From positions 248,001 to 312,000 of the forward strand of contig NW_026781869.1 in assembly GCF_031769215.1 (NCBI RefSeq): a DNA stretch of 64,000 bases, read 5' to 3'. Each line of letters begins with the position of its first letter. The first letter of the stretch is position 1. The DNA comes from Ylistrum balloti (lineage: Eukaryota). The translations under genes and the position numbers were made by a program. Shown piece by piece: positions 2,293-57,656 of the stretch. The notes under the pieces were generated by a model. That model was given only the letters and a program-made list of their open reading frames with translations. It was not told the origin of the DNA and did no database searches.

Positions 2293-3056
2293 GTATGTAT
2301 TTGTTCAAATAACCAATTTATTTTCTACCAGGTTATTCAGGGAGATTTAGCCAAATCATTTATCTCTCTTAATCAGTTTCTAGTTAGTTTGTTACATAAC
2401 TTTACTGTAAGACTTTGTTAGAACATTCACATTAAATGAATTTTTAATCAAATTAGGATTTTGCATATGAAATAATTGCACGGGTGAACTTTTAAAAAAC
2501 AAAAATTCGGGTTGGTACATGATGTATTACAAACATCTTTTTCAGAATATCGTTCATTTCATTTTCGACAAAATGAAACTAGTTCCGAAATATTTTTATT
2601 AATAGTATTATATTGATACCTATATTTAAAGCCGTAAATATCCTCTAGGTTGTTAAGGACCTAAAATGTTATTATTTAAAACACAAAATAATTGAATATA
2701 TCGCCAAAGTGTTAGTAGCATCAACGGTAATTTGACGATTAGCGCTGTTACAAGGAAGATAACTCTAACTACACTACAATATGTTTCATGCATCTCCCAT
2801 GGACAGACACACTCTTAACCATTTCCATATTACTTAAAAATGACATTAAACTGTCTGTAGCCACAACTGTTGTCATACCATGAGAGTAAATATCGTTGTC
2901 CGTGTTCATCTTCCGTAACTGTATATGGGTAGTCCGGTCTTCTTTGTGTTTGTTTCCAAATTAATGTTTTATTTTGATCACACTGAGATCCTCCCTTGAC
3001 TTTCTTCAGAGTTCTTATATTGTACTGCGCTATCTCTCATAAATCAGATTTAGACC

Positions 3057-6000
3057 ATGAAGCTGTTCCTTCTTGCTTGCCTGTTGGCTGGGGCCAGCGC
3101 CGGATTCCTTGACTCGCTATCAGGAGCCTTAACCAGTGTGAAGGACGGACTTACGTCTGCAGCTTCCTCTACCCTGAGCACCCTCACTAGTGGAGACGTT
3201 GGTCAGATCATGTCCCACGTGGTTGTCCCAGGTAATGATGATCTTATATATATATATATATATATATATTTATAGCCATTAGGCCAGACCAACAACTTAC
3301 CATATACCGATACATTATGTTAAACTCACTCTATGTAGAAATCCGAACCAAGATAATAGAAAACGTAGTCAAAGCTTTATATTATAACTTTATGTATTAT
3401 TTGATATCCTAGGTTCCATAAGGCTTAGTGAAAGATTAAGCCACAATATAGAGATACATTTACATACTAAAGACTTTGATATAACAATCCACTAGTAGTG
3501 CAGTATCAAATCTTAACCTCGAAAACCATTGAAAATATTTACATTAAATTCAATATCTTTATTACACGCATTGATCTCGAAGTGTTAAATCATTTTGTTG
3601 TCAAATATATCTGCCCTCGATAGATTCCTTTAGTAGCATGATTGGTACTTTCTAATTACACACATCCTCAGTTGCCGAGCATGCCGCGCTCGCCGCCTTA
3701 TTGGGAAAACGTGAACACCCGTGAGTTACAATCTTGTTACTAACCTTTAACAGTTATTGAAATGCTTACGTCAGTTTTTCACTCCAGGAATAAGACAACA
3801 AAACTTTTACGACTTGGTGTTACTTAAAGTAAATCCATAACGACTCAAATGCAATAAGTGTGACGTAAATTCAGAATTGTTAGGCATGTTTTAAACGGTG
3901 TTAGTATTTAACATTGACTTATCTAAATCTATACTGTCACTTGTTTCTCATTTGTGAATATTTTGTGCTGTCTTTTCATTACAAAACCAGACAGGAACCC
4001 TCGGTCCAAGAAGTGATCAGCCACGGCGCTCAAGCCGTACAGCACGTACTCGACAAGTACGCCACCGAGCTGCAACATTTCCACGAGCAAATCGCTAGCC
4101 TTAATTACCTGAAAGGAGACCTCAACCAGTTCTTCGCTGACATGCAACATTCAAAGTGTATGTGTTATAAACAGGATTTAAGGAAAGCATACGTATTATC
4201 AGCGGTATTGAAAGCTAGTTCCCTACAAAATAAAAACATTCGCGGTATTTCAGAAATAGATGATGTCAATGATTTTTTACAGAATTGCGAGTGTTGTCTT
4301 AGTTTCGTTATCTTGTCTATAAATATTTGCTATTCATACAGTTGAAACGATGTTACTAAACTTCCTGTGTAATTTAATCATATATGAGACAAATGCGACG
4401 TTGGTGAAGTCAATGCGTTTGTTTATTACAGTGGTACACAATACTGCCTTGGACAACATCGTGACTAGTGTCCAGCAAGCTTTGTCCACCCACAAGAGAC
4501 AGACTGCAGACTCTGGACTCCTCTCAGGACTGTCTGGACTCTTTGGCTCAACTGTGGACAAGTTGAAGGAGGTGAGCTGAAGTCTTCAAAATGGAATTCT
4601 ATGATGACGTTTACCATTTCTTTTACCGGGATGGGACATCTTAGGATTCCTGTCTGTGTGACTATCTGTGTGTTTGTCTGTCTGTCCATCAGTCACAATA
4701 ATCCAACTTTTTTGTAATGCCGTCATGAACAGAGCAGATTTTTGGACATATGTTATAACAAGACACAGATCTGTTTTAAGTTTCAGTTCTTCATTGTATT
4801 GTTTTTTTGTACTTTTTTTACTTTCGTTTAGTTTAGACTTTGGTTTTGCCAAATTTTTCCCATTTTGTTTTGTTTGTTTATTCTTTCACATGTCTAAAGA
4901 CTATTCACTAAAATGTTATATATGTTTGGCTTATTACGGACATTCTTTGTGACACTAATGTCTTACTTGTTGCATATTGTTCCTGTCCGTATCACTCTCT
5001 TCAATGAATCAACTTTATTTCTTGTGGTATTTCGACCTTTGACCGCGGATGGGGTCTAGTTCGGGAATCAGAGATAAACTTACGGTGATTTTAACAGAAC
5101 ATCATTCATTTCGGTAATGCAAACCTAGTGAATGTATTTCATAGCTCATTTTGTTCCAACTGACTGAAACATTCACAAGATAAATCAATATTTTAAAAAT
5201 GTCTCAATGGAGATTTCGTTTCAAAGTCATCATTAGTATTATTTATAGTGAGATGTAAAGTAATGGCGCTAACATGCAGAAGAGCGAGTGCATTCAGCTA
5301 CTGCAGGCAAAGGGAGGCTTACAGGGCTCTGGTTCTTTGAACATAAAAAAAACAAGTCCTTTTCCATGTATTTGTGTGCGTGAAGGCTATCGACAATGAA
5401 CTAAACGCGACTTTGTGATGATGAATTTTCTATCAGGCTTTTTTTTTTTTTTTTTAATTGATTTTTTGTTATAGATTTGTGTGTTGCTGTTATATATATA
5501 TATTGTAAATTATTGCAGATTAAATTTAATCCTTACGTGATATCACTGCTCTGTCAAGTACCGATATAGGACTTTTCGGTGCTGTATTGAAACCTGTTAC
5601 AGAAAAATTCAAGTATATACATTTTTTCATCTTCAAGAAGTATACTAGCTTGCTGTGTGGAGGGGTGGGGTCGTAGTAATATATTTGTTTGATAGAAAAG
5701 TTGTCCTGTGTTGAATCAGAAAGACTTTTGTTTCGTTTTCAGTAAAGGAAACTGCGAAAAAGATCTCTGATATTCATGAATATGTGTCTATTAAGTCTAT
5801 TAAAAAGCCAAAACAGTTCACCAAACTATATATGTCATCGACATATATAAATTATTAATTTGTCGTTTACAATACATCAATACAAAAATAAAACATGCTT
5901 GCATGATCTAACTTGAACTTGAAACATTTCTCTTTATGGATTTTAACAAAAGGTTGTATGTCGGTATGACATCAATATTACCTGGTCCACACGGTTTCGG

Positions 6001-7462
6001 CACATCGTGTCACTATTGTTGGCAATATCTGAAATTCTCATGACGTTATTCTCACATAAAATTGACGTCAATGAATACTTCCTAAAAGCAACCCCAAAAT
6101 TATCTTTGATTAAGTGTATTAATCAGTATCTGGTCGCTTTCTCAAAGTCGTTTTATTTACAGTTCTGCCACATGCATATTGAAGTGACTATTTGTGGATC
6201 AATGATTACTCATGTCTGAACGATGTCTAGCAAAATCACGATATCAATTACTTTAACAATGTTTTTTCAGACGTATAACGGTATCCACGACACACTCTCA
6301 CAAGGATCAACAGGTATACTTGGAGCTTTGACCGGCCACATTTCTCATCTGACCGATTCCCTCAGCCATATAAAGGACACTGGCGCAGCCCTTCTGGCCA
6401 CTGGTCAGGAAACACTTGCAAATTTACAGAACTCTGCCAGCACACTCTTTAGTAAGTTACTAAGAAGGCGTCTCTGGTTTATCAAATGCCAATAACAATG
6501 AATATGCATTATTCAATAGGAATGAGATTTGATTAAGGTTTTATACATCAGACAGACAGCATGCAATAGTATCAATTCATTTTCTATCCGTATCAGGAAG
6601 TGGTTTCAAAACAAGACAACTGTTTCTGTTGTTAAACGTGCATCATTCAATATACTGAGATCTGGTATCAGTTTTGCTAGTAAGATGTTTACATGTCACT
6701 GTTGATTCAATATTCAAGGCCTTGTTCCTAATATCACTATTTCCTTGCATGATGTCGATAAATGACATACCAACTCGCTACACTGAATTTTGAAAGATGC
6801 ATGATGAAAACTATTATAGAAATGTCGTCATGTTGCTGCCATTATCGTTTGCGATATAAACGTGGACGTATTTGATGCTCGTTGATATTCCTAACGTATC
6901 TGTTGTTATTTGCATTGTTCATTTGATCACGTGACATTAACTACTTTGGTTGACCAAGATTTAGATGGCTTGTGAAGTCGATAAAGCAGAAGACTATTGC
7001 CAATCTGGAGCACCTATGATCTATACTCTCCTTGTTTATGGTCTCCGTGTGAATTATTCTTTCTTTCATATTTTGCTCTAGTTTTATCGAATTTGTGTAT
7101 GAGATAATTTTCTAAATTTTCGGTATTTTTTTTTTTTTTTTTGATGATGATTTTGACTGCCAACTTTACATATGTTCACTGTATGCATCGGTCAGCCAGC
7201 TCTCTACTTTATTATTATCATTTTAATGCCGTAGTACCTATCCGGGTAATGTAATTTGAGTATACTTACTGTAAAAATATCCTTATTGACCTTGGAGTGT
7301 CTGGTCACTGTTTATTTAATCTTTGTTGCAGTTATGTTATCTTACCGAACCTTAATGGTATATATTGTATGTTTACTTGCAGACCAGGCTCAGGCCGGCG
7401 TACAGGGCCAGGCATCCCAGGCCCTGGATACTCTGCTACATCCCGACCTCGGCAGCTCATAG
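3057..7462 (+). CDS. Secreted His-rich amphipathic-helical polypeptide precursor (263 aa) with G-KR and KR cleavage sites; function unknown
   Basis: Coding exons 3057-3231, 3672-3720, 3991-4157, 4432-4571, 6271-6451 and 7383-7462. All introns are GT-AG with compatible phases (1,2,1,0,1) and the total is 792 nt = 263 aa + stop. Protein: MKLFLLACLLAGASA (signal) / GFLDSLSGALTSVKDGLTSAASSTLSTLTSGDVGQIMSHVVVPVAEHAALAALL-G-KR / EHPQEPSVQEVISHGAQAVQHVLDKYATELQHFHEQIASLNYLKGDLNQFFADMQHSKLVHNTALDNIVTSVQQALSTH-KR / QTADSGLLSGLSGLFGSTVDKLKETYNGIHDTLSQGSTGILGALTGHISHLTDSLSHIKDTGAALLATGQETLANLQNSASTLFNQAQAGVQGQASQALDTLLHPDLGSS*. AATAAA at 7493-7498. The exons are GC-richer than the flanks. Confidence 0.88.
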
Positions 7463-8478
7463 ATTGTGACATATCTATGTATATATTTATCTAATAAAAT
7501 CATCGATGTCACCACACGGGCTTCATATTTCAATTGATTTTAATCATATTTTACGGACAGAATGTTCAGGTAGTTACACCATCTTACGTTCTTGTCATAT
7601 ATATTCCACAGTGTACCTATCAATATATCTAAAAAGGTATGACATTCTAGTATCCAAATACACATAACTAATAAAAAAAAGACTGTAAAAAATCAACCAA
7701 AACAGTCTCTACAAACAAATAAATACATAAAATAGTTCTATGTTTAAGGAGAACAAACGATGTTTTGAATGCGGATTTTTGTCAATTCTTCCGGGTCAGG
7801 AGTTCAGATACGATGGAAGGAATGGAAAACTGCTACACTATGAATGCCGAATATTACGAAGCGTTTAACAGTGTTAAAAAAATCTACATAAAAAAGCGTC
7901 TGAAGAGAACAGACTGAATATTTACACTGCTGCATTATCCGGAGAAAGTAACGATGTACACGTGATTGTTTTATTTTGTTTTATTGTGCACGTTGTTCAA
8001 CTATCCCCCATGTCCAACAAACCGCTTTGTCTTCTTTCGTGTTTCCTTTGTCGGAGAAAATGTCTTAAAGAAAAGAGTCAAGAAGTGTGTTTCAGTACAT
8101 GTATCTTGCGTCTCGCCGTTATACCAACACGAAACTTCTGCGGAGAGAGTACTTGTGTACAACGCAATGATGAAAATGCGTTTCTGCGAAGGAGGCTACT
8201 TTGCGGAGAGACAGTATCGGAGAGAAGAAGCCTGCCTTGATTAAATCTGAGACATCCCTTGTGCTACGCTGTGATCAAAGCCGTTGCAGAGACTCGGTTA
8301 CACTCAAACAACGAATTGAAATTTCACAACCGAGACTCAACAAGAGTAACCCACTCAACACTTGTATACATGAACGTCGGTAAAAGCGGACGATAAACCC
8401 TTTCCAACAAACGAAATAATCCAGCATTATAAATCATATATATAATTCATGACACGAACAGCTCTGGTAGCTGGGACA

Positions 8479-17191: not shown

Positions 17192-19174
17192 ATGAAGAAC
17201 GGTAAAACTAGTGCCATTCTGCTACTAGTATTTATTATCCATGAGACTGTATGCCTGTCATTGCTCCATGGACACATGAAATCACAGGAAGCACTGGCGA
17301 TCAGACCAACATCAGAGTTGGAGCATTTGGAGGCAATCATCGGCGGGGAATTGGAGAGTGAGTCAATTCGATAGTCAGAAACTAACATAGCCAACCCTCA
17401 AATACAAACTGAAGATCTAGAGGAGGGTGCTCCTTAGTTTGTATACTAGTCACTTCGGGAATATCCATGCTGTGTTTTGAAATTTACAAAGGTTTAGATC
17501 GAACAGTAAAACGGATATTTGCGATATAATGATCTCGATAAACATGGCAGTGCTATCCTTATTTTGATCGTATAGATTTAAACAACAATGTTGTTAGAGC
17601 GTCTATTAGTTGATAATTCCAAAATATGGGTCACTTTAATCTGGATTCTTGACCCCACTAATGTCACATTTTCAGTGGCGTAATTGACAGTCGTCACTCA
17701 GGCTGGATGATATGCATATGATAATTTTGCGGACGGACAATTTTCCATAGTAATAATATCGTAAATTGCTTCCATTGGCCAATCAAATACCATGTTACGT
17801 CGCAAATGAAGTAGAAGGGTGTTACAAAAAGTACAGTACATGTTTGAATATAATTGTAGAATAAAGTACTGTATACACGATAGCTGATTAACTGATATTA
17901 GTGGCGTAATTTGAGGCAATCCTGAAGGCAATAGGAAAGCCTATTCGGCTGTAAAAACTGTTTGTAAAGTATGATAAAGCCTTAGATATCCAATAAGTTT
18001 AGAGGAACATCACGAGGGTATGTATATTCTGAGATATAATGGTGTTTATGATACTGTATCACATATATCTTGTAAATGTACATTATGTAGTAAGTAAACA
18101 GGTATATAATGCGCGTTTATTGAATGATACACTTTCTGTACGTAGGACGAATCTAACGTGCTCCATTCTTAGACGCGATAGAGCCCATTCTATTTAGTAA
18201 GGCATTCACACATAGTTATCATAAAATGATATCTGATTTTAGATACGCCCATACATGTATTCCTAGGCAACAACTCACATTTAATCTAAAAAAGATGAAA
18301 AAGTAGGGACCAAATTCATGTCATTTTGCAATTTGGTAGATAAATAATTCCAATATGTATATTTCAGTCTGACAAAACTATACACAATGAGAAAGCAATG
18401 CGTTCTTATGGTGATCATTCGGGACATATTTGAGATACATGTAAGGTGTGGCAGTGGTTGTTTTCTTAAAATCTTTCTCGGCGTAAATATCTTTACACTT
18501 TAACGTATTTGGATTCTCAAAAAAAAAAAAAAAAAAAATACAAACCCCGAAGCAGCAATGAAAGGAATCGGTATACTAGAATAATAACTATTTAGGAAAA
18601 TTATGATAAGATTGTTGGCATCTTAAAGAGTTTGATTAATTGTACTGCAGAAAATGGGTAAGGATTAAAGTATAAATATCACCCCCATCGCAGCGTAGGA
18701 ATTTGAAGAGTGCAAATGAAGTGAAAATATTTCTTGTGCGATATAGCAACAAGAAGGTACTATTGACATTCGACAGATGAGATCCTTTGTGCCCCTCATA
18801 TATATAGATATACGCATCATTTTTTTATTTATTAATTTGAAGGTCTCATCCCTGAAGGACTAACGGACGCTCTTGGTCACATTATCGGCAGACGAGTAGA
18901 GGTAGGTAATGACTTAATACAGTATTGTTGTATCATGTCTCAAATATTATCATCATTGCTTTTGACATATTCTTGTTATCCCGTGTTTTTTAATTATCTA
19001 TATGTAAATGCTATTGATTTGCATATGTTTAGAATAATTGACTTTTACAGTTTTAATTTCTTTCTTTCTTTTTTTTTTTTTTTTTTTTTGCCCATGACGA
19101 ATAGCTTATTTTGTTTACTTTCAGGCAACACACAGATTGTAAATCCAAGTTCCAGGAAGACGTTGTCTGTTTAA
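17192..19174 (+). CDS. Secreted His/Glu-rich amidated peptide precursor (80 or 92 aa) with a G-RR site; function unknown
   Basis: Exons 17192-17357 (donor gtgagt, phase 1), 18843-18901 (donor gtaggt) or 18843-18905 (donor gtaatg), and last exon from 19125 (acceptor ttttgtttactttcag). Protein: MKNGKTSAILLLVFIIHETVC (signal-like) LSLLHGHMKSQEALAIRPTSELEHLEAIIGGELESLIPEGLTDALGHII-G-RR-VE, then ATHRL* (stop ends 19142) or VGNTQIVNPSSRKTLSV* (stop ends 19174). AATAAA at 19205-19210. Confidence 0.72.
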
Positions 19175-19766
19175 CCGAGTGCTGTCTCCTGAATCATGTT
19201 TGTAAATAAACATAATTAAAGGCATTGTCACAGGAACCTAGGTTCGTGATTGCGAATGATTTAGTGTCCTCTTGACAGCAAGGGTTATATGAAGCCTGTA
19301 GTTCAAGAGGCCAAAGATTGAACGAAAATAAGTGTTGTAAGCGGCATAGGCGTATCATTCATATAGTTTTGATGTTTCTCTGGAGGAAGACTCCAAGGAA
19401 ATATTTCGAAGGGTAGGATATGAAATGCAGTGGAATACAGCAAATCGTATGGTTAATAAAATATGTTGCTCGCAACTGAGCGAGATCGGGACATCTCACT
19501 CGAGGGCTTGGATCCTTTAACACAATCCAAACCGTGGGCGTTAGCCGAGATTAGGATGTTACAGGATATGATTAAAGAAACAGAATATCTTTGATATTTT
19601 AACTACTACATTACCTATGTTTTTGTCGTCGAAATGCACAGATGTAAGTGCCACCTTCGCCTACACGCGGATGAATACACCAATGCTTACAAAATTCCGC
19701 GAAAGCGCACGTAAAGATACTAAATAGATCGGGCGCGATAGAAAAGTATAGGATGGGGTATTACGT

Positions 19767-46344: not shown

Positions 46345-46498
46345 CATTTGACGGCATGATGTCTTTTGTAACCTAGTATTCCAACATGTCACATGGACAT
46401 TTGAAGGCATGATGTCTTTTGTAACCTAGTATTCCAACATGTCACATGGACATTTGACGGCATGATGTCTTTTGTAACCTAGTATTCCCAATTGTCAC
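46345..46498. repeat. 53-bp tandem repeat, about 3 copies
   Basis: catttgacggcatgatgtcttttgtaacctagtattccaacatgtcacatgga starts at 46345, 46398 and 46451. Confidence 0.95.
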
Positions 46499-46934
46499 AG
46501 GTAATGCAATTTAAAATTTGACGAACATATATGTCTTCTAGATTTCTGAGGCTTAGACACAATAGAACTGATATCGATACTATAAGAGTTACAATCACGT
46601 TCGCTCTCTGTACACCTGGAACATATCATGGCAAAATTGAAGATTCCATGTGCGTTACCTTGTGGACAAGATGAAAAGGATAGTTTGATCCTTTGATGTA
46701 CATCAAACGAATTTCGAGGTCATATACGGTATGTTGTAATGGCTTTGAAGTTGGGTGTCGCTCCTTTGTAAACTTCAAAAAGAGGCATGTAAATTACTTC
46801 GCCTGTGTCTTCTGTTTTGCCACGACATGTTCCAGGGGTGCATGGAGCGGAAGTGATCGTACCCCTAGTAGTATCCAAGATGTCGTTTTACAAATATAGC
46901 ACTATCCATACAGTCTACGATTTTTATTACAGAT

Positions 46935-47504
46935 ATGATGCGATTCATAGCACTGTTGACTCTACTCGTGGAGACTTGCCTGGCTTTCCCGCCATTCAGC
47001 CGCGGATCATACACACTCAAAGTGAGCGGTGAACGCAATGGATATGACGCAGACGCAACGCCAAGTACGGATCACACAAATTCTCTTAGTCTCGGTGACG
47101 TTATGATGCAGACCCTTGCCAACCAAGGGACAAATGTTGTGGTAAGTGACAGGTACGAGTATACTACAAACCCTTCCGAGGGTGACTGGGACGTGTTCCG
47201 GGCTGGGCTGGTCTCCCCACCCTCGGGCCTCCTACAACAGTGTTTGTCTCTTTCATCAACAGGCATGCAACAGCTGTTATACTGCATCAAACTATTATCG
47301 AATAAAGATCAACTTCATCAGTCAAATGTTCAATCAAAAAGAGGCCCGCTTAAGCTTAACCCAACAGGATGGAAGAGAAAAAAGAGGAGTACAAACGATG
47401 ACATGCAGAGAGAATTAGAAAATATAAGGATTCAGTCCATGTTGAATCAGTTACTTGAAAAACGCCAAAATGCCAATCCTCGATTTAACCCGACAGGCTG
47501 GTAA
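46935..47504 (+). CDS. Neuropeptide/peptide-hormone-like precursor (189 aa) yielding GPLKLNPTGW and QNANPRFNPTGW; family unassigned
   Basis: Single coding exon after acceptor tttttattacag (46931-46932). It has a signal peptide MMRFIALLTLLVETCLA, KR-GPLKLNPTGW-KRKKR, a spacer STNDDMQRELENIRIQSMLNQLLE, and KR-QNANPRFNPTGW-stop. The two peptides share NPTGW, and there is one Cys pair in the pro-region. Confidence 0.88.
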   Translation: MMRFIALLTLLVETCLAFPPFSRGSYTLKVSGERNGYDADATPSTDHTNSLSLGDVMMQTLANQGTNVVVSDRYEYTTNPSEGDWDVFRAGLVSPPSGLLQQCLSLSSTGMQQLLYCIKLLSNKDQLHQSNVQSKRGPLKLNPTGWKRKKRSTNDDMQRELENIRIQSMLNQLLEKRQNANPRFNPTGW

Positions 47505-53904: not shown

Positions 53905-55407
53905 TCACACAGTTGATGTATTTTCACAAGCACAGCCTGTTCCTTCCTCAATTGGAATCATGACGTCATTTGAACCTTTATCAGAATCATTGTTTCGCGG
54001 TACGATCACGTATCCTGGGGTGAATGATTTTCTATTCCGTGGAGCACATTCTGCTCTACAATCGGCGGGGCATCGCTCCCAACCGCGACGTATTTTCTTT
54101 ACGTAACAACTTATGCACGGAAGGCTAAGCACAAGTTTGAACAGAAGTGTCAAAAACGGTAGAACAGAACTCAAAAACGTGATTGATCGAACCATTGCAA
54201 CGGGTCCTTTTGACCAACCAGGAGCTCCCATTATTACCACGTGACCAAGTGACAGTATCAAGGTGAGATGTCCGAGTTTTGATTGGACGAATCTCCACTC
54301 CCGCCAGTTGAGTGTGTCAGTCACGGATGGTATGGTGGAGATGGCAATTAAACACATTGAGATAAATGCGAGAATTCCTGTGAGACATGCTGCCTCCCCT
54401 TTCCACACCATCCACGTCTTGATAGGCACTTGAATGTCGTGGGTAAGATTGCCCGGAATTGTCAGGGACGTTGATTGATACCATGAACTCAAGTATGTCG
54501 GACTCATGATAAGGACGGACATGATCACGTGCACTACCACCAAAGTAAAGGCCACTAGCCCGAGCTGCTTACGTGTTTTTAACCAGCGGTCGAGCCATGC
54601 CGGAAAACGAATGTGCTTAGTTCCGTAATAGATCTGAAAAAACGAAGCCACAGAGCTAGGTAAGTAGGTACAGGATATCAGAGTTATTGCAGTCATACAC
54701 AGCGGTTTGTTCAGCACCTTCACAAAGATTTGATCCCAACGGTAAGCCGTCTTTTCGACAAAGTAAATAAAAATGATATACAAAAGCCAGATGTTAAAAA
54801 CACCAATCGCGAACGCTATCGGCCCCCTCCATGCAGGCAAAAGCTTTAACGGAAACGCTTCGATCTTTCTCGACGACTGTAATAGACCCATGTCAACGGG
54901 TGAAAATCCCATGTCACGAGCTATCACCGATACCTTTTCCCGCGATTCATTGTTGTCGCTGGCAATGAACACCTGTCGGCTGCCACCGCTGCTGTCAATC
55001 TCCATGGCGTAGGCCGAAATGACGTTAAAACCCTTCACCACGACGGCGGCCGGGACCAGCCGGCTGAGATACTCCGCATTGCTGTCGGTTTTACTAGGAT
55101 GGTCTCGGTTGGACACGTCTATTAGAATTTTGCCGTGTACGTTTTCTGTGTGGGCGGATAGACAATCTTTGTAGTTTGCGGCGTGGACTGCAACAAAGAT
55201 GATGGAATTACGTTTGAGACAGTCTTCAATCGTAGTGATATTGATGTTACACATACACTCGTCGACAAATGCCAACGTCCGGTCATCAGGCTTCCGGCTA
55301 CCGACGATGACGTTGTATCCAGCATAGAATAACCGATTTGCTAACGCACGTGCGAAGTTGCCAGTTCCAATGATTCCAATGTTCCGGGCGACTGCCTGCT
55401 TCGTCAT
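53905..55407 (-). CDS. STEAP: STEAP-family metalloreductase (N-terminal NADPH-binding oxidoreductase domain plus ferric-reductase transmembrane domain), 500 aa
   Basis: Rossmann motif IGIIGTGNFARALA, then GSRKP, ILIDVSN, SNAEYLS, VVKGFNVISAYAM, RKQLGL, WREWRFVQSKLG, and candidate heme-ligand His in VVVHVIMS and LGHVV. The true start is the ATG at 55407, 10 nt after an acceptor tgatatttccag (exon begins 55417); the ORF track's TTG start is intronic. Minus-strand AATAAA at 53766-53771 and 53786-53791. The STEAP2/3/4 subtype cannot be assigned. Confidence 0.95.
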   Translation of the reverse strand: MTKQAVARNIGIIGTGNFARALANRLFYAGYNVIVGSRKPDDRTLAFVDECMCNINITTIEDCLKRNSIIFVAVHAANYKDCLSAHTENVHGKILIDVSNRDHPSKTDSNAEYLSRLVPAAVVVKGFNVISAYAMEIDSSGGSRQVFIASDNNESREKVSVIARDMGFSPVDMGLLQSSRKIEAFPLKLLPAWRGPIAFAIGVFNIWLLYIIFIYFVEKTAYRWDQIFVKVLNKPLCMTAITLISCTYLPSSVASFFQIYYGTKHIRFPAWLDRWLKTRKQLGLVAFTLVVVHVIMSVLIMSPTYLSSWYQSTSLTIPGNLTHDIQVPIKTWMVWKGEAACLTGILAFISMCLIAISTIPSVTDTLNWREWRFVQSKLGHLTLILSLGHVVIMGAPGWSKGPVAMVRSITFLSSVLPFLTLLFKLVLSLPCISCYVKKIRRGWERCPADCRAECAPRNRKSFTPGYVIVPRNNDSDKGSNDVMIPIEEGTGCACENTSTV

Positions 55408-56976
55408 AATGCTAGGCCTGGAAATATCAATCAATTAAGCTATAGTAATTAAAATGATAAGTTTCCATTTACGTAAAATCACAGGAAATAGATTTTTTAA
55501 AGGTAAACCTAATTGGTACAAAGAAGGAATTCAAGCATTCACATAAATCTGCGGAGTTTATTCCGGAAAAAGCTGTGCTATCTTTTAATGTATTATTTTT
55601 GAGAACGTAACACAGTAATAATGATGTACTATGCAAGGTTTGCCAGAATTTCATTAAACACAAGTCGAGAATGTTTGAATAAGACATGGAATATTAAAAA
55701 TAACTGTTGCGCTGAGTATAATTACATGTCTATGTACACAAAGACAATATCATCCGATTATTAAATCAGCTTCATGCCAAATTTCCGGACCATATTAATG
55801 AAATACAAATCATTTCCAGGAAATGTTGTATTAATAATCTGGATAAAAAGGCGACAGTAAAAGCTGTTATCACGAAGTAATTGTGTAAGAGATATCGCCT
55901 CTCACGACAGATTGTAGGCAACTCAAAGCTACTGATTTCATTTTCAAAATTTAGATCTGTACAAAACGCACGCCGAAAAAAAATTATACATGCAATTAAC
56001 ATCTACAAGTATTTTGTCATATATATCTTGAATAGTATCTTGATTTCAGAACTGTAAAGTGTGGCTAAGTGCCTAATGTTTTGCGTGAAACATACATATG
56101 AATGAACAATACTTCATCGTGACGTAATATAGCCAATTGATCTGCGATCAAAAACAAGACCTTATCTGTAACGCTTTGGATTTCAGTGTTATCGGCCAAG
56201 ATTGGAAAACTTATGCATGTGGTTTATCGAGACGGAAGTATGTGCACAAGATATACATAAATGATACGTGATCTCCATAATAAGTTCATATACATAATGA
56301 CGTGTCTACGTCCTGCTTAAACATTGACAGAATAGCAATCATCGGCTTAACAATATATATAAAAATCTTCTTTTCTCTAGCAAATATCTTTTTTTTTTTT
56401 TTTGGTTAAAAATGCGAGTATTGAAAATCCGTGCATGGCATTAAGTATCCATATGTTGAAATGTATGAAGTATATATATGTATAAAACACAGTCCATTTT
56501 CTGCGTTAAACATTTGACATTTAAACCCACTAGTCAATACAATAACAATCGTGCACAGTATGGTTACTACATCGATATCAAAATGCCAATGCTAACGTCA
56601 TGTTGTCCTGTTTAGAATAAGTAATGATTTTACTGTCAATATCCGCGCCTAATTTTACAAATTGTATAAATACAAATGGATTTCAGTATATCACTCATCT
56701 ATTGATAAATTTCGTCGGTATTTTTTTTACTGGGCGGAAACCATGTTCGTGGTTAGATCAAAAGACCGAAGCAGAAAAAATGTTTTTAATCATGGAATAT
56801 AAAATCGTACTTTTTGTAAAATACTATAAGAATATCAAACTGTTGAAAATCTAAACTACTATGAAAACCGATTTTCTATAATATAAAATCACAGGAGAAA
56901 CACTTGTCGTAATCCTGTATATTTAAACCTGTAACACTCATTATGTAAGTTAAAGAAATAAACAAAACAGAAAAAA

Positions 56977-57550
56977 TATAACTACTGTAGTCAGTAACAT
57001 GGATCTGTTATATAACTACTGTAGTCAGTAACATGTGGCTGTTATATAACTACTGTAGTCAGTAACATGTGGCTGTTATATAACTACTGTAGTCAGTAAC
57101 ATGTGGCTGTTATATAACTACTGTAGTCAGTAACATGTAGCTGTTATATAACTACTGTAGTCAGTAACATGTGACTGTTATATAACTACTGTAGTCAGTA
57201 ACATGTGGCTGTTATATAACTACTGTAGTCAGTAACATGTGGCTGTTATATAACTACTGTAGTCAGTAACATGTGGCTGTTATATAACTACTGTAGTCAG
57301 TAACATGTAGCTGTTATATAACTACTGTAGTCAGTAACATGTAGCTGCTATATAACTATGAAGTCAGTAACATGTAGCTGCTATGTAACTACTGTAGTCA
57401 GTAACATATAGCTGTTATATAACTATTGTAGTCAGTAACACGTAGCTAATATATATATATATACTACTGTAGTCAGTAACATGTAGCTAATATATATATA
57501 CTACTGTAGTCAGTAACATAGCTGTGATATATCAACTGTTGTTTGTAACA
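56977..57550. repeat. 34-bp minisatellite, about 16 copies, built from short palindromes
   Basis: Unit tataactactgtagtcagtaacatgtggctgtta starts at 56977, 57011, 57045 and so on, and decays after about 57340. Confidence 0.95.
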
Positions 57551-57656
57551 TGCAGCAGTTGTCAATGTTTTAGGTAAAAAAAAAATTCAATGCTTGTTCA
57601 GAAATTCCCGAGGCTTCGATCTCTGTCAGATATATTTACATAATTATGAGCCTGAC

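Follow-up and report, generated by a model that had tools for sequence, protein, structure and literature searches.

A 64,000-nucleotide stretch of the genome of the scallop Ylistrum balloti (contig NW_026781869.1, positions 248,001 to 312,000; hereafter the window) contains, on its + strand at 3057-7462, a gene for a predicted secreted protein of 263 amino acids (aa) with two conserved Lys-Arg motifs. The locus is a real, functional, single-copy gene, and with roughly even confidence we propose, from the features of its sequence, that it encodes a precursor which convertases process into three long helical peptides sensitive to pH or metal. The gene is strongly constrained, has no detected relatives outside scallops, and has been given no function in four annotated scallop genomes. 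It is already annotated in RefSeq, where it is unnamed, and the gene itself is not new.

The six exons, all with AG/GT borders, join into an open 792-nucleotide (nt) frame, and the spliced product is letter-for-letter identical to XP_060086086.1 (P0007), an independent gene model listed in RefSeq as "uncharacterized protein LOC132565461 [Ylistrum balloti]." This identity bears out the gene model of the original prediction, which had been made from the letters of the window. Database searches were made exon by exon, and later full-length analyses were performed on P0007. The product is predicted to enter the secretory pathway via a canonical 15-aa signal peptide (residues 1-15), in which Met-Lys and a hydrophobic core (LFLLACLLAG) are followed by A-S-A before Gly16, in agreement with the -3/-1 rule. 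This signal peptide is conserved in all family members, meaning the aligned scallop sequences, and it holds the sole Cys of the product; the 248-aa mature protein is Cys-free. Two dibasic motifs, G-K-R at residues 70-72 and K-R-Q at residues 152-154 (DNA 4494-4502), divide the mature protein into predicted pieces of 54 aa, 79 aa with 8 His, and 110 aa with an N-terminal Gln, and the product has 15 His in total. Secretion, the two prohormone-type motifs, the Cys-free mature region, and each of these lengths and counts had been put forward in the original prediction, and our analysis reproduced the figures exactly and found the ending A-S-A that supports secretion.

Every orthologue and paralogue found retains both motifs. 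All 6 aligned sequences, paralogues included, read G-K-R-[E/D] at the first site, and K-R occupies the second site in 5/5 sequences that cover it, one of which is a 50%-identical paralogue whose second site reads K-R-K-R-K. Each of the four orthologues has exactly two Arg residues, both of them inside the Lys-Arg motifs. In 200,000 shuffles of the mature sequence, this placement of both Arg residues after Lys had a probability of P = 0.0011, which fell to P = 0.0002 when one G-K-R was also demanded. After the first motif comes a linker with Pro (E-H-P-Q-E-P), after the second a stretch rich in Gly and Ser, and Glu and Gln are permissive for convertases in the position after the cut. The Arg pattern, the conserved Gly, and the linker context appear hard to explain with incidental motifs, and cutting at the Lys-Arg motifs into three long peptides is a plausible reading of them.

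The six-exon structure is common to four genera, with exons of 175/49/167/137-143/181/74-80 nt, all GT-AG, at the genomic loci of the orthologues (Table 1). Pairwise Nei-Gojobori comparisons gave synonymous divergence (dS) of 1.1-1.5, which is saturated, nonsynonymous divergence (dN) of 0.10-0.21, and a dN/dS ratio (omega) of 0.08-0.14. Omega varied little between the signal peptide and the three pieces and was lowest in exon 3 (0.03-0.08). The sole public run found is genomic DNA from another individual and has no spliced joints; it differs from the window at 34 positions over 3000-5285, of which two are exonic (4514 and 4526) and lie in synonymous Ser codons. No paralogue was found in the window or, with exon 3 and exon 5 as queries, in the whole 648-Mb Y. 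balloti genome, and no second copy lies within 10 kb of the orthologue in two other scallop genera. Mizuhopecten yessoensis has the 50%-identical paralogue 7.5 kb downstream of its orthologue, together with a third copy that is badly modelled.

As far as our searches reach, the family has been found so far only in scallops (Pectinidae). A phmmer search with exon 3 against 1.84 billion representatives returned scallop proteins and one spurious repeat protein but no relatives from outside scallops, a profile word search returned six scallop entries only, and the C-terminal domain searched alone revealed no shorter relatives. All database relatives are named uncharacterized or hypothetical. An 877-aa repeat protein (P0004), which scored E = 3e-6 in the exon-3 search but had an hhalign probability of 0.7%, was rejected as a relative. 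In the Protein Atlas there was no named cluster, and one rotifer hypothetical cluster stood at 0.86, under the 0.9 lead level. No paper was found in literature searches with the accessions, LOC identifiers, or characteristic sequence motifs, and the same searches found no proteomic or peptidomic record.

Searches of Pfam, NCBIfam, and PDB sequences gave nothing above threshold and only sub-threshold helical families. Baculo_PEP_C scored 20.6 bits against a cut-off of 38. Apolipoprotein A1/A4/E (PF01442) scored 17.7 and 16.1 bits against a cut-off of 90 (E = 0.003-0.01) in two orthologues only, and Apolipophorin-III (PF07464) scored 12.9 bits against a cut-off of 36.3 (E = 0.12) over residues 171-242 of P0007 and matched none of the four other members. 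ApoO was likewise sub-threshold (E = 0.02), and no perilipin (PAT) family was among the Pfam matches up to E = 10. A likeness of the helices to exchangeable apolipoproteins or perilipin repeats had been drawn from the sequence; taken as family membership, it does not survive best Pfam scores of 12.9-17.7 bits against cut-offs of 36-90 and the lack of any perilipin match. By its own terms, the original prediction would also have fallen if the product had proved to belong to a structural or shell protein family already characterised, and when this was looked for, no named mollusc shell-matrix, byssal, or structural family matched in Pfam, NCBIfam, PDB, or the literature.

The amphipathic-helix character that had been read from the residue spacing was confirmed. 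The hydrophobic moment, averaged over 18-residue windows, peaks at 95-100 degrees with z ~5 against composition-preserving shuffles, and the hydrophobic periodicity of 3.65 residues lies above the shuffle 95% bound. Pro occurs at 58, 75, 78, and 258 only, with no Pro-punctuated repeat pattern such as the tandem 11/22-residue repeats of Apolipoprotein A1/A4/E. The mature protein is predicted to be almost entirely amphipathic alpha-helix, interrupted only by a Pro hinge (P58) and the two Lys-Arg motifs. Modelling with AlphaFold had been suggested as a check: two AlphaFold2 runs on a shallow alignment of 5-6 sequences both gave all-helix secondary structure, but the predicted local distance difference test (pLDDT) was 45 with the signal peptide and 51 without it, no fold could be assigned, and neither run produced a confident helix bundle. 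The low-confidence models place helices at precursor residues ~17-44, 48-69, 80-154, and 158-256, with breaks at a Gly/Asp stretch (~45-47, slightly N-terminal to Pro58) and at both Lys-Arg motifs (69-79 and 153-157). A Foldseek search against the PDB returned nothing below E = 0.1, and its matches were generic long helices.

With a pI of ~5.6 and 6% His, the mature protein is calculated to have a net charge of ~-10 to -12 at pH 7-8 and of ~0 at pH 5.5, a shift that is due to its ~15 His residues. Each piece in every orthologue is anionic, at -3 to -8 at pH 7-8, and reaches at most ~+1 at pH 5.5. Nine His columns are invariant across the orthologues of the four genera, and five of them (104, 106, 133, 200, and 210) are retained in the paralogue too. 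The motif Q-H-[F/Y]-H-E at 103-107, in piece 2, forms the core of the family.

Under the processed-precursor reading, PC1/3- or PC2-type convertases in a regulated-secretory cell would cut after K71-R72 and K152-R153, and a carboxypeptidase would then remove the basic residues. Gly70 would then give rise to a C-terminal amide, and cyclisation of Gln154 is possible. The products would be a hydrophobic helix-hinge-helix peptide of 54 aa, a peptide of 79 aa with 8 His and the invariant Q-H-F-H-E core, and a peptide of 110 aa. Within acidic granules, where His would neutralise their charge (~0 at pH 5.5), these peptides might be compact or self-associating, and after release they would dissolve, carry a strong negative charge, and become capable of binding surfaces, lipid, or metal. 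A fuller version of this proposal is that scallops possess a family of their own of amphipathic helical peptides that are anionic, rich in His, and very long (54-110 aa), freed from one precursor by neuroendocrine-type Lys-Arg cleavage, the first of them amidated, with a His-based pH/metal switch that condenses them at granule pH and, in sea water or haemolymph, lets them bind lipid, metal, or a surface. We regard this version, in all its parts, as possible but rather doubtful. If true, it would describe a peptide class that is neither classical neuropeptide, cationic host-defence peptide, nor apolipoprotein.

Several observations weigh against processing, and some of them point to a substantial, if minority, possibility: that the secreted protein acts intact, as an exchangeable-apolipoprotein-like or surface-active amphipathic helical protein in which the Lys-Arg motifs are structural loop residues or sites of later turnover. 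Candidate roles for such a protein include a lipid or carotenoid carrier, a secreted-matrix coating, and a metal-binding plasma protein. The protein is constrained evenly from end to end and contains no fast-evolving spacer, and this purifying selection over all segments fits an intact protein equally well. Arg is absent from P4 at both Lys-Arg sites. Given the established furin rule, R-X-[K/R]-R, ubiquitous furin therefore probably would not cut, and PC1/3- or PC2-type enzymes of a regulated secretory cell would be needed. Usual processed peptides are far shorter than the 54-110 aa of the predicted products, and the helix breaks at the motifs are weakly supported in the models (pLDDT 45-51). 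The protein is also absent from the catalogue of 63 precursors from the ganglia transcriptome and peptidome of the Yesso scallop and its supplements (PMC5996578).

Internal similarity bears on the same question. Piece 1 resembles the start of piece 3 (GFLDSLSGAL... and GLLSGLSGLF...; p = 0.007), the remainder of which is in turn similar to piece 2 (p = 0.005). This suggests an old internal duplication within the protein. Read in this way, the product may be a two-unit helical protein with a Lys-Arg motif at only one unit junction, and the sub-threshold similarities to the apolipoprotein families and ApoO would be in keeping with an intact protein. Those similarities are, however, far under the Pfam cut-offs, and a helix bundle of apolipoprotein type was not modelled with confidence and did not emerge from Foldseek. 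An intact protein also leaves three features unexplained: the confinement of Arg to two K-R motifs in 4/4 orthologues (P ~0.001), the Gly before the first motif in 6/6 sequences, and the strengthened second site of the paralogue.

A third and improbable explanation is that the gene encodes a precursor of membrane-active, antimicrobial, helical host-defence peptides released on injury or infection. Its segments are amphipathic helices, piece 1 is predicted to be an amidated helix-Pro hinge-helix peptide, and in three of five family members its C-terminal part can be aligned with caerin 1.1 of frogs, scoring z = 4.0-5.3 relative to shuffled sequences. Helical peptides that are rich in His and depend on pH are known (clavanins and piscidins), as are anionic ones such as dermcidin. 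The original prediction had compared the segments with helical host-defence peptides, and in its classical form this likeness is weakened by the charge of the three pieces: when compared with cationic alpha-helical antimicrobials, they have the amphipathicity but lack the positive net charge. In being anionic, the three pieces depart from almost all membrane-lytic peptides, and a classical cationic antimicrobial role is therefore unlikely. The caerin likeness was noted post hoc and is not significant in Argopecten or in the paralogue. Immune effector genes are usually fast-evolving and multi-copy, whereas this gene is single-copy in Y. balloti, lacks a second copy within 10 kb in two other genera, and has an omega of ~0.1. 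A classical neuropeptide or hormone precursor, with a single short stretch acting as the signal and spacer making up the rest, has a signal peptide, dibasic sites, and an amidation Gly in its favor, along with other small peptide-precursor-like genes nearby (17192-19210 and 46935-47504), but it is highly improbable given that just two cleavage motifs make a short product impossible, that no region is relaxed in the manner of a spacer, and that the protein is missing from the scallop neuropeptide catalogue. The original prediction had likewise judged that this is not a classical neuropeptide pattern.

Table 1. Exons and 3' signal of the gene, given as positions in the window, and its orthologues in three other scallops, given by accession
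Feature	Position or accession	Strand	Description
Exon 1	3057..3231	+	175 nt; start codon, signal peptide (3057-3101), N-terminal part of piece 1 (GFLDSLSGAL...); GT donor at 3232
Exon 2	3672..3720	+	49 nt; end of piece 1, G70-K71-R72 (3704-3712), then E-H-P
Exon 3	3991..4157	+	167 nt; within piece 2; most conserved block of the family (YATELQHFHEQIASLNYLKGD.NQFF)
Exon 4	4432..4571	+	140 nt; end of piece 2, K152-R153 (4494-4499), Q154, Gly/Ser/Leu-rich start of piece 3
Exon 5	6271..6451	+	181 nt; middle of piece 3; conserved His 200 and 210
Exon 6	7383..7462	+	80 nt; C-terminal tail (...QALDTLLHPDLGSS); TAG stop at 7460-7462
AATAAA, likely polyadenylation signal	7493..7498	+	31 nt 3' of the stop codon; read from the sequence, with its use presumed
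Pecten maximus orthologue	XP_033760444		82% identity to the window protein
Mizuhopecten yessoensis orthologue	XP_021361998		84% identity to the window protein
Argopecten irradians orthologue	XP_069104845		75% identity to the window protein

Two 82-aa open reading frames, P0001 and P0008, were recovered from Logan contigs of ~1 kb, which are unassembled public data. They contain an exon-3 homologue 65% identical to that of the window, flanked by intron-like translation, and they appear to derive from a genomic copy in a species or paralogue more diverged than any of the four named orthologues. At the M. yessoensis locus L003 (NEDP02004201.1, 97028-137762), the original annotation fuses the orthologue with an upstream diamine acetyltransferase gene. 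The fused model, OWF46309.1 (410 aa), is named "Diamine acetyltransferase 2," and clustering at 90% places that acetyltransferase with the orthologue. Synteny with the acetyltransferase was considered and rejected: this enzyme gene is the upstream neighbour in M. yessoensis, but in Y. balloti it is missing over 20 kb upstream, and two other scallops lack it in the 10-kb flanks. In a further M. yessoensis model, OWF46311.1 (P0003), the C-terminal half alternates in-frame ...ALDTLLHLDSDS... units with what is apparently another frame of the same exon-6-like unit, and this half is either a mis-model or a tandem expansion.

Other features of the window lie around the gene. A TATA-like string is too close to the ATG to fix the transcription start, and a promoter was not placed. 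Within intron 5, at 6686-7157, genomic run X1 shows a summed contig depth of 70-450, up from ~11, along with numerous loose ends and short skips, and this stretch looks like an interspersed repeat or mobile-element fragment. Minisatellites are found at 1113-1570 (a 43-bp unit in 10.7 copies with 96% matches, 1.5 kb upstream of the gene), 46345-46499 (a 53-bp unit in 2.9 copies), and 56976-57560 (a 34-bp unit in 17 copies). At 17192-19210 (+), a small three-exon secreted precursor contains MKNGKTSAILLLVF... and then ...GLIPEGLTDALGHII-G-R-R. It has weak colinear matches ~5 kb downstream of the A. irradians orthologue (L005:19607-19687, E = 0.01; L005:20598-20654, E = 0.008) and may be a conserved neighbour. 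Homology with the main gene is not supported, with an hhalign probability of 0.1-4% over 9 columns. On the - strand, 53905-55434 is an uninterrupted 509-aa open reading frame with F420_oxidored (E = 2e-18) and Ferric_reduct (E = 5e-7) domains in a region of higher local G+C (0.43); by its domains it is identified as a STEAP-type metalloreductase and is apparently intronless.

The gene illustrates cleanly how a secreted protein can be conserved yet taxonomically restricted, and its family combines features not usually seen together. If the K-R and G-K-R motifs are used, prohormone-type processing would yield long, helical, anionic peptides, a type of product that peptide-prediction pipelines discard. 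Should it instead act uncut, the protein would become a candidate for the mollusc counterpart of the exchangeable apolipoproteins. Hypotheses of metal binding, pH-dependent self-association, and lipid binding follow from the conserved Q-H-F-H-E core and from the change in charge between pH 5.5 and 8. Either outcome, processed or intact, would be of moderate, specialist interest.

Comparison with known systems places the scallop protein, by the tests run, in neither the exchangeable apolipoproteins nor the processed-prohormone families, and the relationship to each appears to be one of likeness at most. The exchangeable apolipoproteins are similarly secreted and Cys-free, rich in Ala, Leu, Ser, Thr, and Gln, and built of long amphipathic helices with a periodicity of ~3.65 residues, and the C-terminal 80 residues of the scallop protein bear a faint profile similarity to them. 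The scallop protein differs in falling under the family cut-offs, in giving no confident bundle model, in its 6% His, in its restriction to scallops, and in its conserved G-K-R and K-R-Q motifs, which the apolipoprotein families are not known to have. With the prohormones processed by PC1/3-PC2, carboxypeptidase E, and PAM it shares a signal peptide, conserved Lys-Arg motifs, a Gly before the first, and a Gln after the second. It is unlike those precursors in having only two sites, in its helical anionic products of 54-110 aa, and in being equally constrained over its whole length, and neither the Pfam searches nor the neuropeptide catalogue revealed a sequence relation to a named peptide family.

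The resemblance to caerin 1.1 of Litoria concerns the C-terminal half of piece 1 (...SHVVVPVAEHAALAALL, with a predicted amide; residues 54-69, DNA 3216-3231 and 3672-3703), which recalls ...PHVVPVIAEHL-amide in the confirmed caerin sequence (PMC7412766). Caerin 1.1 is a weakly cationic, amidated helix-hinge-helix peptide of 25 aa, whereas piece 1 has 54 aa and a net charge of -3 to -4. This resemblance was noted post hoc with a large, unaccounted multiple-testing burden and is probably convergent. The granins (chromogranins and secretogranins) were compared by properties only, with no sequence similarity detected. Their chains are mostly disordered, with abundant Glu, Asp, and Pro, whereas the scallop protein is predicted to be helical and is rich in Leu, Ala, and Ser. 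Like the scallop protein, however, granins are acidic, secreted, and marked by dibasic motifs. Granins condense in acidic granules, and the neutralisation of the scallop protein's charge near pH 5.5 could drive the same behaviour.

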